Part shown: in pieces, positions 3,076 to 33,751 of the stretch
How the letters are laid out: the number at the start of each line of letters is the position of its first letter
How positions within the stretch are numbered: the first letter of the stretch is position 1
Origin: Adineta vaga
Taxonomy: Eukaryota > Animalia > Rotifera
Direction of reading: 5' to 3'
Assembly (NCBI GenBank): GCA_021613535.1
Contig: CP075495.1
Span: 12,586,001-12,650,000 of the forward strand
DNA: 64,000 nucleotides
Program-made: the position numbers and the translations under genes
Notes under the pieces: generated by a model
The model's input: only the letters and a program-made list of their open reading frames with translations
What the model was told of the DNA's origin: nothing
Database searches by the model: none

Positions 3076-4637
3076 ATGTACCGAATAAGTTTATACAATC
3101 TTCTGATTTTATTCATTTTTTTACAAATTTTCTCAAAAATCCAATCTAACTCTTCAACAACAATTTCATCAATAGTGAATAATGAAACAATACCATTATT
3201 ATGTAGTTATTGTGAAACAAAGGCATGTCGTTGTTCTTCAACATATAATACTTTGAATTGTTCATCATATCTATTAAATTTAACATTTGCTTCAAATTGT
3301 GTAGAAAATCAAATTTGGAATCTCGTTGATTTTTCTTCACGTAATTTCGAATCATTCGATTCGACTCAACTTCTATCATTACGTATGTATCGTCTGTTAT
3401 TAAAATCAAATTTCATAATTAAAATATATGATCACGCATTTGATTCAATCGCTGATTCACTCATTGAACTTGATTTACAAATGAATCAAATATCAAATAT
3501 TTCATCAAAATGGTTCAATTCTAAATTTCATCGATTACAAATATTAAATCTTGCTTTAAATCAATTAGAAACATTTGACGATTTTGATCATATTCATTTA
3601 CCAGCTCTACGAGAATTAAATTTATCTGGAAATCAAATTGAATTCTTTCCAAAGCAAATTCATCAATGGATATCATTAACAAAACTTGATTTATCATTTA
3701 ATAAACTTTCTAGTATACCAAGATTTGCACTATTTGGTCTTCAAAATTTAAAATGGTTATCATTGGCATCGAATAGAAATTTAACTTGTAAATATTAATC
3801 AACAGAATATATCTCATTCGAATGTTTAATTTATATTTAGGTATTGTACAAGATTCATTTAAACATTTGAGATTATTAAATTATCTCGATTTATCAAGTA
3901 CAAATTTATTTACTGTTGATGGTTGTATTTTTCTTCAATTGATCAGTTTAAAAATATTGAAAATCGAACGTGTAACTATGAACTGTTCATCGTGTTGGTT
4001 ACCTATTGCAAGAAAGAATTCAATTCAATCGATTGGACAATGTCTTGATAATAGTACAATACATAATCTCAGTTCATTAACTGATCAACAACTCGATTCA
4101 TCATGTTCAAAATCATCTATTGATTGTTCTACAGACTCTTGTGAACCAGGTTCATTCAATATTGATTCAAAATCTCTTTCTTCAATGAGACAATTATCAA
4201 CTTTAGCTAAAAATTCTAATGCATCAAAAAATCGTACAATTGAAATTGTCCTTGCGATTATATTCAGTATAATTGCTTTGTTGATTATTATATTTATTGT
4301 TATTTTAGTCTATCGATGGAAGCAAGGTAAAAAATTATTATGTTGCAATTTATTCCCAGCATCATCCACAATGTTTGGAGTAGTACGACGCAATCGTCAT
4401 CAACATCAAAAACAAATTATAAATAACAATCCAACAATTATCGAATCCGTAGTTACACATGGAGCAAATATGGATGTTTCACCTTCATATGAATTAAGTT
4501 CGAATAATAAGCGAAAACTTTATAATCCGATGTTTACCGATACGCCATCAAACGACATGAATTCTCCACAATCATCAACAATTTTTTTGAATGAGAATCG
4601 CTTCCAAAAGAATCAATTACTTTCAGAAAATCTCTAA
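3076..4637 (+). CDS. Leucine-rich-repeat single-pass transmembrane protein (2 exons; intron 3788-3840)
   Basis: Signal peptide, Cys-rich LRRNT, multiple LxxLxLxxNxL repeats, Cys-rich LRRCT, TM helix (IVLAIIFSIIALLIIIFIVILV) and a cytoplasmic tail with LYNPMF. A GT..AG intron joins the 240 aa and 271 aa ORFs in frame. Confidence 0.85.
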
Positions 4638-28315: not shown

Positions 28316-30902
28316 ATGGAACCAGCTCCTTCATCATCCAATATTTATCGTTCACATTCTGATCGTGATCTTCAATCAAATGAAAATCGTTTAACACGAT
28401 CTAATTTAAAAAGTTCTTCCTCAGCGTCGAATATTCCTCTTCAAATAGCAATAAATACAGTGATACCTTCCAATTCATCTGTACCTAATTCACCACTTCT
28501 ATTACCATGGGATCGTTTACAAAAATGGTTATATGGAATAGCTGTCGTTACATTCGATCTAGAGTTAGGACAATCAATTGAACTTCTAATACCAAATCAT
28601 TGTAAATTAACGGATAAAGAAAAATTAAATTTATCTTATCTATCATTTCCCGATGCTAATTCAACATTTCTTGGCGATACACAATATCATTTTCGTATAC
28701 GACATGAATCAACATTACCAAGTTATTATCAATATTACAATTCGATTGTTCCACCTGCCTTACAAGTCGATGCAAATTCCTTATTTGGTTATGTACATTT
28801 TCGTCAAATTCGTGATAAAACAGTGAAACGTGGTTATTTTCAAAAATCACTTGTACTTCTATCAAAACTCCCATTCATATCTTTATTTCTATCGATTGTG
28901 AGTGAACTTGGTCCAAATTATTTTCAATATGGTCTAACTAGTCTAGAAACATGCTGTCATTTAATGGATCATCAATGGCCTGAACCAGAACCAGGCAAAA
29001 CATTATTACTACCTCTACTAGGTAATGTTCTTCAAGTACGTATTCCAACCCATGGTGATAAACCATTCTCATCCTCAGATCTTGTTCAATTTCGTTCAAT
29101 TGTTACTGAAAATACAACGTCAAATAATAGTAATTCGATCAAATTTCCTATTGATGATGATTTAGACATAGACACATCATCTGCAAATAGTTCTCTAACT
29201 ACTAAATCTCAGGTAAGTTCACTTCTAATTCATATTTATTTATTTTCATTATAACTGTTTAACGTAGATTTCCACAACTACAGATCAACATACTTATACA
29301 TCGTTTGAATTTCTACAAAAACATGAACAACAATTACCTCGTTTAATTCCTTTTGTGCATGATGTGAATACATATCAATCATTATCATCAGTTTTAACAC
29401 ATATTCAACTTTTATGGGAATTGATTTTATTGAATGAACCAATTGCTATTCTGGGCACTTTTCCGACATATTGTTCACAAACTGTGCAAGCGCTTGGTAA
29501 ATTATGTTCCTAGTCTAATGTTAGAGAGAAAAAAAAATGCCAAGGAGAACCGAAAATACAATAAGAGTGTACATTAATAATAGAAGATTTGCATTCACAT
29601 TAAGATTGAACAGATATTCTGTGTCAAGAACGATAGGATAAAAAAATGACATCATTTTAGCAAATTTTATAAATGCTACTGTATTTCATCGAGAAAATGT
29701 TGTTAAGAAAATTTAGCCATTTTTGATAATAACAAATACATATATGAATCGTGACCAATGTCTTTCAATTTCTAGTCCATATGATCTGGCCATTAAGGTA
29801 TGCATCTGATTACCGTCCATTCTTTACTATTCATAACAGTGAATTTCAAGAGATTACATTTAATTCCTCGAAAAAACCTTCTAAAATATTCTCTTCATCT
29901 TCTCAAACTCCACCGATGCAACCATCGATTATTATTGGTGTAACAAATCCATTTTTTGCTAAACTTCTCAATCAATGGCCTCATATTATTCGTGTTAACG
30001 ATCATCAACAAGACCGATTAAAATCTCGACAGAATGAAAATTTTCTTTTCGTCGAACAGAATGAAACCAATCTTTCTCTACATGAACTTGAAGATTCAAC
30101 AACTGATTTATCATCATCACCTCAAACATTAACATCCATTTTAAAAAGATTTCCAACAAGTTCCAAACCATACAAACGTTCACGTTCAATTAATAACAAT
30201 TCTTCACATTTAACATTTGATATGAAACCTGGTCTTTATACAAAATATAAACCACATCTACAACGTGATAAAATCATTCTAAAAAAACTACAATCATCGA
30301 ATTCTCAACAACGTCCAGATACGGTTCAAAATGCTTTAATACGTCGTTTCTTTCTAGAATTAACACAAAGTTTTATTATACCATTGGAACGATATTTCGT
30401 TAGTCTTCTACCATTACGTAAATATTATCAACCTAATCGAAAACCACCGACAATTAAAAATTTTGATAATGAAGAATTTCTCAAAACACTTGATCAATAT
30501 GGTCCACAATTGACATCAGGATTAAAAGGTGATTGGAAAGATTTATATAAACATTTTATAACGACACCAAATTTTCGTTTGTGGTTATCCGATAGACAAC
30601 AAGAAGGAAATGCTAAAATCTTTTCTTTATACATTGAAACGATTGCTAATTGTCGTTTAGAAGAAGATTTGAAACTTTCAAAATTAACTGAAGTTGAATT
30701 AGTTGATTTATTATTAAAATTTCATGAATTAATCCAAAGATTAGAATCGAAAACAGATGATTTATTATTAACAATTGATCAAAGTAATAAAAATGATTAT
30801 AGACATAAATTACAAATGAAAATAAAAATAATAATTAATGAAAAATTATCTGAAGATATGAAATTATTGTTTAGTAAACAAGTTAAGCTTTCATCCTATT
30901 AA
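28316..30902 (+). CDS. DENND6: DENN domain-containing protein 6 (FAM116; Rab GEF); 3 exons
   Basis: VVTFDLELGQ, YLSFPDANS..GDTQYHFRIR, FRQIRDKTVKRGYFQKSLV, LLWELILLNEP, DYRPFFTIH, IIGVTNPFF, ELTQSFIIPLERY. Confidence 0.93.
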
Positions 30903-31227
30903 TTTACTCTTCAATTATTTGTTTATTTCTTTCCTTATCTACCAATCAAATCGGTGATCAGAATCTAGTTTGTTTTTTTTTCTTCACTTCATTTTGTTTT
31001 CATTCTTGATTTCTCTAATAACTGAATACTCACAACATATTTATTGTATACTCATATTTTGTATTCTTTTCTCTATTGTTCTATAACAGAAGAAAAGAAT
31101 TTTTGTTTGTACTTTTAAAAAAAGAATGCTCAATATTATATTTAGGAGAAGAAGAAAAAAAAGAGCAACAAGTCTTTTGGGAAATATAGATATCATTCTT
31201 ATTATTTGTTTGTTTATTAGATGTTCA

Positions 31228-31867
31228 ATGACGAGTTTAAATTTATGTCTTTATAAATCTATTCAACGTATTGCTTGTTTAAGCAAACGGTAAGAGATTG
31301 TCAAAGAAAAAAACGAATCAAATGAAAATAGTTTGAATTTCATTTATATGTATTGTTTAGTCAAACAATTCTAAACGTACGTTTCGTCTCGACAGCATTG
31401 CCTGAGAGTTGGTATAAACGTTTTCCACCAATTGACGAAAAAGATATCGAAGAAAAAGCGATTAAAGGTTCAGGACCCGGCGGTCAGGCAATAAATAAAA
31501 CACAAAATTGTTGTCAAATAAAGCACGTTCCCACAGGTAAGTTTATTATTGTCTTATATCTTCGTTATTAGATAATTAGAAAATGAAGAAATTCTTCTTT
31601 GTAGGTATTGTTGTTACATCTCAACAAACGCGTTTTTTGGAAAAGAATCGTTTATTAGCTCGTCGTCAATTGCAAGAGAAATTGGATGTTCATTATAACG
31701 GTGAACAAGGTCTTGTTGCTCAATATAAACGAGAAAGAAGTGAAAAACGAGAAGCACAACGTTTAGAAACAAAGAAAACGTTAGAAAAGAAGCGTGCTTT
31801 CAAATCTGAACAAGATACTTATTCCAATACAAATTATGATGATTCATCAGACCAATCAGTTAAATAA
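31228..31867 (+). CDS. MTRFR: Mitochondrial translation release factor in rescue (C12orf65), GGQ peptidyl-tRNA hydrolase; 3 exons
   Basis: Targeting peptide exon, then [59 protein letters not shown] and a basic C-terminal helix. Confidence 0.9.
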
Positions 31868-31874
31868 ACACATC

Positions 31875-33532
31875 ATGAATTATTCGACAAGAGAATGTCG
31901 AACACCAACGTGTGAAGAACTTAATTATGAGACGAGTCAAGTTAAATGTCCCCATCGTGAAAACAATACTTCCGGAGAAAAATGTCAGAAAATCTTTAAA
32001 AATATCATGGCACTCAATGTACATCTTCAAATGTACCATAAAGAAATAGGCATTCTTACAGTTAGTCAAAGATCTTATCGAACCATAATTTGTTTTATAA
32101 ATATGTTGAATTCTAGGCATTTAATAAATATATATCATACGTAGGTCGTTTTCATTGTCCGATTAAAAATTGTACATTCCATCGTTGTTATGGACAATGT
32201 AGTTTTCTTCCATGGTCATCATCATCATCATCATCATTCTCAAGTTTTAATGCCGTACGATTGGTTAGTGATATAATTGATCTTTTCGATGATGTAAATA
32301 ACTCAACAATTTTCTATTTGTCTATTCTAGCATTATTTACGACAACATGGTTTAAAAAAAGAACAATGTTCAAAATGTTCAAAATCATTTGGTCTTCATC
32401 AAGATTTCATCGCACATGAAAGAATGTTTGTAATAATTTTAAATTTGCAATTAATAAAGAAACGATAATTTTTTTCATTAGTTGTGGTATTCAATGTCCA
32501 TTTTCTTGTTCGAAGTGTCATGAACAATTTCATAATCGAACTAGTTTACGACGACATCAATTGAAATTCCATACAGATTCAAATAGAACTTCTCCTGTCA
32601 TAAAGTAGAAGACATTTCTTTTGTAGCTTCGAAATGGAATAAACGAATCTTCTTTCTATAATCATAGTTCTTCTTCTTTATTAAAACCGAAAGAATATCG
32701 AAAACGACTCAATCGTCGTCGTCCTCTTTCATCTGATCAAATTGAACTTTCTCGTCAAATTATTCCTTCAACTCCACATTCATCAGTCATTATTAATCCT
32801 CACGCTTTAGCCCTTCTTAAAACTTTCAAGTCTGATTCAACATCTCGTTCATCTACAATAGATTCATCTGTTACATTTGAATCCACTAATAATAAATCAA
32901 CTCAAACAACCAGTTATGTTTCTGTTGGAACAGAATGTTGTTCCTTTGCTTTATCACAATCAATATCAATGAAAGTAACTGAACAAAAATCCAGTCAAAC
33001 AATGAATCATAGTAGAATGTGTAAAAAACGAACAAGATATTCTCTGTCATCTTCAAATCATTCAAATACATCACAATGGAAAAATATTCATGTCATCGAT
33101 ATGGAAACACAAATAGCATCTCCATTACGTTCTGATATGTCTATTCAAACCATAAATATCGCTTCCGATTCATTAGATTTTTTACCTAAATCACCAGAAA
33201 ACCATCATAATGTTATCACTCAAACATTACCTATATCAATGACATCAACAGAAATGCAAACAATCAACGAAATATCCAACCAATGCAACAATTTAAATAA
33301 CTTTCCAGAACAAGAATCTGTTGGTACATCATGCTTTTTTGATGATTTCTTATTGAATGATTTAACATCCTCAGTATTCTCTGATTTGAATGTAATAGAT
33401 TTATTTGATTTTATTGATAATGGCACACAAACATATTCAACGCTAACTAATCATGAAACACAAACAGTAGCCGATTGGAATGACATAGTGATACCTGAAG
33501 ATGAATGTATTCAAACGATTATGAATACTTGA
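31875..33532 (+). CDS. ATMIN: ATM interactor / ASCIZ zinc-finger transcription factor; about 5 exons
   Basis: PTCEEL followed by four C2H2-type fingers (C..CQKIFKNIMALNVHLQMYH; FHCPIKNC..HYLRQH; CSKCSKSF..HERMC; CSKC..LRRHQLKFH) and a C-terminal array of LC8-binding TQT-like motifs (STQT, METQ, ITQT, GTQT, ETQT, CIQT). Confidence 0.85.
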
Positions 33533-33751
33533 CATATAGATTTTTTTTCTTCTATAAATAAAACGGTTTTTTTTCTCAGTATGTTTGATATGCATTGATC
33601 GCATTTAATCTGTGACTAATGCGAAGGTTCAGTCACATCAAATATGTGTTGTATCTCTTTTACTAGAATCTATAGAAGTATTTATTTACAATCTAATATC
33701 TATACACAGTAAAAAAACCACAGAGTGTAACAAATAGAGAACAACATTCGA

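Follow-up and report, generated by a model that had tools for sequence, protein, structure and literature searches.

A 64,000-nucleotide (nt) stretch of chromosome 2 of the bdelloid rotifer Adineta vaga (GenBank assembly GCA_021613535.1, contig CP075495.1, positions 12,586,001 to 12,650,000 of the forward strand; the window, whose coordinates are used below) contains a gene of the MTRFR (C12orf65) type followed directly by an ASCIZ/ATMIN-like gene. The two open reading frames (ORFs) lie in different frames and are predicted to overlap, the gene order is the same in other Adineta assemblies, and contigs assembled from RNA carry a spliced leader (SL) ahead of the first ORF, lack introns, and run through both ORFs without a break. 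The reading somewhat favored here is that the pair is expressed as a conserved dicistronic MTRFR-ATMIN mRNA, in which ATMIN is translated by leaky scanning or by reinitiation after a short upstream ORF (uORF).

Under this reading, there would be one transcription unit, with a single SL added at the AG at 31219-20, six introns removed, and one poly(A) site used near 33565-33579, giving an mRNA with the order SL, 11-codon uORF, MTRFR (166 codons), and ATMIN. The ancestral ATMIN start at 31839, with 31836 beside it, would lie 26-29 nt before the MTRFR stop; since the ORFs overlap, there would be no room for an intercistronic processing site between them. Ribosomes that bypass the uORF AUG and start at the weak AUG at 31228 would make MTRFR, while those missing the AUG at 31228, either by leaky scanning or by translating the uORF and then resuming scanning beyond it, would make ATMIN. 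On their way, ribosomes bound for ATMIN would meet only two more weak AUGs (31245 and 31686) ahead of the strong-context pair at 31836 and 31839; the AUG at 31875 would serve as a back-up.

Probable overlap of the reading frames, and gene identities

The MTRFR coding sequence (31228-31867, plus strand) has three exons (31228-31289, 31361-31536, and 31605-31867), and the ATMIN/ASCIZ-like coding sequence (31836-33532, plus strand) has five (31836, 31839, or 31875 to 32060, 32117-32263, 32331-32425, 32482-32604, and 32668-33532, with TGA at 33530-32). Direct reading of the junction agrees with a preliminary description of the locus: MTRFR ends in GTT AAA TAA (TAA at 31865-67), the spacer ACACATC (31868-31874) between this stop and an ATG in the other frame at 31875 contains no AG, and the ATMIN frame stays open as far upstream as 31794 and includes further ATGs at 31836 and 31839. 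That description presented the pair as a stop and a start 7 nt apart, which is correct for the ATG at 31875 alone; as a framing it does not hold, as the conserved start is upstream and the ORFs most likely overlap, in a zone (31836-31867, plus strand) where the AUGs at 31836 and 31839 fall within the last 10 codons of MTRFR.

Database records differ on the ATMIN start, which is placed at 31836 in the NCBI model (protein P0001) and at 31875 in the ESM Atlas record. In Adineta steineri (contig L003), the MTRFR stop is at 3859-61 and the only in-frame ATG 5' of the conserved first zinc finger is at 3830, giving an overlap of 32 nt. The only in-frame ATMIN ATG of Adineta ricciae (contig L004, position 3839) overlaps MTRFR by 23 nt, as does that of a fourth, Adineta-like contig (L025). 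The A. vaga chromosome 5 ohnologue and a copy from another genus (L006) begin at the homologous ATG, and the N-termini of all five ATMIN copies compared start with "MI." The ATG at 31875 is common to the two A. vaga ohnologues alone and is missing from A. steineri, A. ricciae, and L006, and a look-up in public contigs gave no record of an A. vaga ATMIN product starting there. From these comparisons, the overlapping AUG at 31839 (or 31836), not 31875, can be taken with good confidence as the real ATMIN start. Because the upstream ATG is conserved across copies, the ancestral layout would be one of ORFs overlapping by 23-32 nt and not one with a 7-nt gap. The locus also has a bearing on annotation: NCBI and the Atlas disagree, and a gene finder that does not allow overlaps will give one of the two genes a wrong start or omit it.

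The identities given to the two genes in the preliminary description hold. Exons were searched singly, and the database proteins P0001, P0044, and P0052 were used in place of joined exon models. MTRFR exon 2 matches the Pfam RF-1 family (PF00472) with an E-value of 6e-9 and 36.3 bits (cut-off 35) and has the GSGPGGQ sequence; the full-length orthologues P0044 and P0052 score 79-80 bits to the same family. The product is short (166 codons), with the RF-1 domain as its sole Pfam match, a lysine/arginine-rich tail, and none of the codon-recognition domains of class I release factors, and by inspection its 21-residue N-terminus looks like a mitochondrial presequence. The upstream gene is thus predicted to encode an MTRFR/C12orf65-type mitochondrial release-factor-like rescue factor. 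A homologue search returned 166-amino acid Rotaria orthologues, but no 100% identical A. vaga MTRFR protein; the gene may be absent from public A. vaga annotation, perhaps owing to its overlap with the ATMIN model.

The ATMIN product is identical to A. vaga protein I4U23_009681 at NCBI (P0001, 484 amino acids). For the N-terminal cluster of four ASCIZ-type C2H2/C2HC zinc fingers typical of ATMIN, its matches to finger families are below cut-off, with 18.8 bits for C2HC_ASCIZ (PF24759, cut-off 25) and 24.2 bits for PF22995 (cut-off 27). In the ESM Atlas, it has feature scores of 0.95-0.97 to clusters that contain ASCIZ finger families or are named "ATM interactor," with structural template modeling (TM) scores of only 0.35. 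Between residues 275 and 478, P0001 has nine xQT/xQI motifs, of which four are strict TQT; their positions are kept in five bdelloid homologues, and by these motifs the C-terminal half is predicted to be a region of the LC8/DYNLL-binding type. Together, these features identify the product, by sequence, as ASCIZ/ATMIN-like. A (CAT)n run in ATMIN exon 2 (32207-32247) encodes a serine run (SSSSSSS), the length of which varies among species.

RNA contigs across the junction

The RNA evidence consists of Logan assembled contigs, not single molecules, from runs X1, X10, and X6 of three studies; X6 is labeled as another organism, and the (CAT)n run was skipped as a repeat when contigs were placed. 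GT..AG introns are removed in all three runs, including MTRFR introns 31290-31360 and 31537-31604, and the ATMIN exon joints are also seen, whereas contigs of DNA run X9 cover introns and spacers and have no joints. A 1991-nt contig from X10 extends from 31219 to 33579 with every intron removed, begins with a remnant of the SL, and stops at the ATMIN poly(A) site. Contigs from X1 (31219-32061) and X6 (31744-31952) also cross the MTRFR/ATMIN junction unbroken. The shared poly(A) region (33557-33579, plus strand) comprises an AATAAA at 33557-62 and the 3' ends of RNA contigs at 33565 (X1) and 33579 (X10). ATMIN intron 1 (32061-32116), spliced in X10 and X6, is retained in an X1 contig that is colinear with the genome over 32067-32206, which reflects either retention of the intron or another isoform.

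A single 5' end is seen for the unit, an SL trans-splice acceptor made up of a T-rich tract and the AG at 31219-20 (31201-31220, plus strand; T fraction 0.75 in the 20 nt preceding the AG). The X10 contig has the loose letters CTTACCAAG just before 31219, which together with this AG form the last 11 nt of the rotifer SL, reported as GGCTTATTACAACTTACCAAGAG (PMC3795323). An X1 contig has four extra letters at 31219, and an X6 contig begins exactly at 31221. The A. vaga genome has at least 59 SL-gene copies (23-mer search with up to two mismatches), while an exact 25-mer of the SL plus GT has no genome match. SL genes are mostly in divergent pairs about 155 nt apart (e.g., G000:C1:2551160-2551336), leaders with one or two changes occur, and clusters are found on C5 at 9.88-9.93 Mb and 10.91-10.93 Mb and on C2 at 8.68-8.69 Mb.

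Contig depth in X1 is 8.96 for MTRFR with ATMIN exon 1 and 8.9 for the rest of ATMIN, and the X6 values are 3.4, 2.5, and 2.6. One RNA species should give equal depth of MTRFR and ATMIN, whereas two species would do so only by coincidence. The boundary between MTRFR and the DENN-domain gene upstream serves as an internal control, as contigs stop there and the SL shows. No separate SL-ATMIN contig or short polyadenylated MTRFR contig occurs among the two contigs of X1, the three of X6, or 2/3 of those of X10. There is also no SL loose end or contig end within 31605-31900 in the three runs, although the SL at 31220 is seen in them, with the limit that contigs cannot exclude minor forms. On the provisional basis of assemblies, one processed RNA thus contains both complete ORFs, as in a mature dicistronic mRNA, and neither an SL of its own for the downstream cistron nor a poly(A) end of its own for the upstream cistron is found, as would be seen in an SL-resolved operon.

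The preliminary description proposed that one mRNA encodes both proteins. In support of this are the spliced, SL-headed contigs from three studies and their equal depth; against it, such assemblies can chain neighboring transcripts. Contig L008 chains the DENN-domain gene, MTRFR, and an antisense gene, and L005 chains ATMIN with a PNKP-like gene. The assembler, by inference about its method, likely trims short ends, be they a 23-nt SL joined to an internal acceptor or a poly(A) tail, and two transcripts that share an overlap of at least 31 nt would come out as a single contig. Contig depth is a coarse measure unsuited to ranking, and no RNA contigs of loci with both genes (A-type loci) were found from other Adineta species. 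With these points counted against it, a dicistronic mRNA nevertheless probably exists, with the contigs representing single molecules.

The main rival explanation is a gapless SL operon with mutually exclusive processing, which is unlikely, though it deserves more weight than the other alternatives. Both genes would lie on one primary transcript, the SL would be added at an AG in MTRFR exon 3 5' of 31836 (e.g., the AG at 31813-14), MTRFR would be polyadenylated just past its stop, in ATMIN exon 1, and the dicistronic RNA would be an intermediate or by-product. SL trans-splicing is active at the locus, and the probable removal of short SL and poly(A) tips makes their absence from contigs weak evidence, but neither such a contig nor such a loose end is found in three runs where the SL at 31220 is visible, and the equal depths would have to be coincidental. 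The sequence CAAG at 31811-14 is kept in A. steineri, A. ricciae, and the chromosome 5 copy, but this is uninformative because it falls within conserved MTRFR codons. The internal AGs of MTRFR exon 3 are preceded by 20 nt with T fractions of 0.05-0.40, compared with 0.45-0.75 at used acceptors. Trans-splicing at CAG 31848-50, which the preliminary description offered as an alternative, was rejected as a general mechanism, as was use of the AG at 31858-59, since either acceptor would delete the only in-frame ATMIN start of A. steineri and A. ricciae.

A gapless operon would also require an MTRFR 3' end near its stop. An AATAAA does overlap the stop in A. vaga (31863-68), as noted in the preliminary description, and in A. 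steineri; as a special signal it was rejected. The hexamer is frequent in this AT-rich DNA, and between 31221 and 33620 there are ten other AATAAA/ATTAAA sequences, several of them in exons that RNA contigs read through. Neither AATAAA nor ATTAAA is present near the MTRFR stop of A. ricciae, and because of this absence A. ricciae MTRFR needs a 3' end further downstream.

Proposed translation of the second reading frame

As stated in the preliminary description, an out-of-frame ATG at 31221 precedes the MTRFR ATG. This AUG, the first codon after the SL, opens an 11-codon uORF (31221-31256, plus strand) that overlaps the MTRFR AUG at 31228 out of frame. A. steineri, A. ricciae, and L025 have a uORF of the same length. 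It thus occurs in each of the four bicistronic A-type loci examined, and also in two of the five loci without ATMIN (present in L010 and L024; absent in Rotaria sordida, L007, and L008). A correlation between uORF and ATMIN was rejected as evidence, as it is suggestive without being significant and the loci are not phylogenetically independent.

The uORF AUG has G at -3, supplied by the SL. The AUGs at 31228 (MTRFR), 31245, and 31686 have U at -3, whereas A occupies both -3 and +4 at the ATMIN AUGs (31836 and 31839). All AUGs between those of the uORF and ATMIN, at four homologous sites in three species, have U at -3, with the exception of the second in-frame MTRFR methionine in A. steineri. 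These contexts suit leaky scanning, or translation of the uORF with scanning resumed past the MTRFR AUG, and both ORFs are intact and conserved. There are also points that weigh against a scanning route. Leaky scanning past four AUGs, or reinitiation about 580 nt after the uORF, is inefficient in standard models, and because the MTRFR stop is 5' of four exon junctions, the mRNA would be sensitive to nonsense-mediated decay under the exon-junction model. Depletion of ATGs between the MTRFR and ATMIN starts is weak in A. vaga (two observed, 5.4 expected, fraction 0.05) and not significant in the other two species; being marginal in A. vaga alone, it was dropped as a signature of leaky scanning. 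Judged by sequence, the chance that ATMIN is reached by scanning, whether leaky or after the uORF, is just short of even.

Termination-coupled reinitiation on the dicistronic mRNA, with ribosomes moving from the stop at 31865-67 back 26-29 nt or forward 8 nt to 31875, is improbable. Stop and start are close together in every Adineta copy (overlap 23-32 nt), but the sequence of the MTRFR tail is poorly conserved, and reinitiation after an ORF of 166 codons normally needs a dedicated cis element. The extra A. vaga AUG 8 nt past the MTRFR stop would be a suitable target. In copies that have lost MTRFR, a short uORF frequently terminates at or next to the ATMIN AUG, with AUGA in L006 (18-41) and L012 (about 2190-2225) and UAAUG in L015 (about 900-1000). 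This pattern could be read as a sign of coupling, but AUGA overlaps are automatic when a start reads ATG-AT; they may follow simply from that, or may reflect reinitiation control of ATMIN.

If the dicistronic reading with scanning is correct, a further proposal, speculative and unlikely on present evidence, is that the dicistronic mRNA is older than the split between Adineta and Rotaria and has been conserved since, and that the uORF directly behind the SL divides scanning ribosomes between the mitochondrial rescue factor and ATMIN, the nuclear regulator of LC8/dynein. The uORF would fix or regulate the ratio of the two products, for example under stress that alters reinitiation efficiency, and the pair would have been deliberately left unresolved by an SL trans-splicing animal. 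The locus offers a compact system for examining how one scanning ribosome is shared between two ORFs.

Conservation, neighboring genes, and known systems

The gene order DENN-MTRFR-ATMIN-HORMA (HORMA on the minus strand) is the same in the A. vaga, A. steineri, and A. ricciae assemblies. The preliminary description had allowed that the adjacency could be an assembly artefact; this is excluded by the shared gene order and by a contig of DNA run X9 that spans 31495-31997. Over 30600-33750, X9 has about 35 single-base differences and four indels relative to the window, mostly fixed per contig and with the junction intact, indicating either the other haplotype or another A. vaga lineage.

In R. 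sordida (L011), L007, and L023, an intact MTRFR is directly followed by a decayed relic of ATMIN exon 1, and because of the position of this relic the overlapping layout predates the Adineta/Rotaria split. The reverse loss is also found. The A. vaga chromosome 5 ohnologue (G000:C5:7127050-7130283) has ATMIN, an SL-acceptor-like site ("cttAG|ATG"), and a relic of exon 1 with its donor, but the MTRFR ORF is gone except for a stop-containing relic of its tail (ND*LSDKSI*). The body of MTRFR is deleted in L012-L016, where an SL-acceptor-like site of the same form ("tttcttAG|ATG" and variants) is located 30-130 nt before the ATMIN AUG, and RNA of L006 and L018 has the SL 28 nt before this AUG. Scanning metagenome contigs with a junction pattern gave no matches, and a profile-based metagenome scan gave MTRFR-less copies only. 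Loss of MTRFR thus seems to have left ATMIN with the unit's promoter and leader site, which fits one shared 5' end. The pair is ancient within bdelloids and underwent reciprocal loss after genome duplication, leaving natural "deletion mutants": MTRFR-less copies that keep the SL-acceptor-like site, and ATMIN-less copies that sometimes have no uORF.

These copies bear on another explanation, that ATMIN is transcribed independently, from a promoter and capped start within intron 2 or exon 3 of MTRFR, and that the contigs merge two overlapping transcripts. Contigs cannot show transcript starts, and Logan contigs chain even convergent neighbors (L008), but additional ATMIN-only RNA should raise ATMIN depth, which is equal or lower. 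Several bdelloids have MTRFR-less copies that keep the SL-acceptor-like site and have evolved no new start, and in the only species with RNA for such a copy, the ATMIN mRNA is SL trans-spliced. An internal promoter is therefore very improbable.

The last exon of the DENN-domain gene (29751-30902, plus strand) ends 318 nt 5' of the SL acceptor, and RNA coverage is absent from 30812 to 31218. In another bdelloid, RNA contig L008 (Logan SRR5248432, 243-3171) links a complete DENN-domain ORF to spliced MTRFR across a spacer of 227 nt, which suggests that DENN and MTRFR are possibly co-transcribed as a conventional SL operon 5' of the dicistron. A second candidate operon junction is found in RNA contig L005 (208-3016), where a PNK3P/AAA_33 (PNKP-like) ORF follows "ttgtgcttAG|ATG" 85 nt past the stop of an MTRFR-less ATMIN paralogue.

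True dicistronic mRNAs are rare in animals and are unexpected in a phylum with SL machinery that normally cuts polycistrons apart; a search of one paper library found no description of rotifer operons or dicistronic mRNAs. Viral termination-reinitiation sites include the M2-1/M2-2 overlap of respiratory syncytial virus (RSV), the termination upstream ribosomal binding site (TURBS) of caliciviruses, and the UAAUG of influenza B. The Adineta junction is similar in that stop and start are within tens of nt, with an overlap of similar length to that of RSV M2; it differs in that no TURBS-like or other dedicated cis element was identified or tested and in that the AUG contexts point to scanning over coupling. 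SL-resolved operons of the Caenorhabditis elegans SL2 type also combine same-strand, unrelated housekeeping genes, one promoter, and SL trans-splicing. Their spacers of 100-250 nt contain a poly(A) site and an acceptor and yield monocistronic mRNAs. At the present locus there is instead an overlap of the ORFs with no acceptor or poly(A) end seen in between, and the mature RNA as assembled retains the two ORFs. Operons that lack an intercistronic region (gapless operons) occur in C. elegans (SL1-type), Ciona, and Oikopleura (in part, PMC1488885). They share with the present locus a spacer of essentially zero and an SL trans-splicing animal. The acceptor of a gapless operon is at or just past the upstream 3' end and the downstream mRNA has its own SL, whereas here the conserved downstream AUG precedes the upstream stop and no SL-ATMIN form is found in contigs.

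By analogy, the unit would work like known eukaryotic dicistronic mRNAs with overlapping ORFs. Human MOCS2A and MOCS2B are translated from a dicistronic mRNA by leaky scanning, with ORFs overlapping in different frames. Polycistronic mRNAs of green algae are also among the eukaryotic mRNAs with adjacent or overlapping ORFs read by leaky scanning (PMC7896298). The Adineta unit differs from these mRNAs in that its cap is acquired with a trans-spliced leader in an animal able to separate cistrons, its uORF overlaps the upstream ORF, and translation of its second ORF is a prediction. What it would have in common with them is one capped, polyadenylated mRNA with two unrelated conserved ORFs, a weak upstream AUG, and few intervening AUGs.

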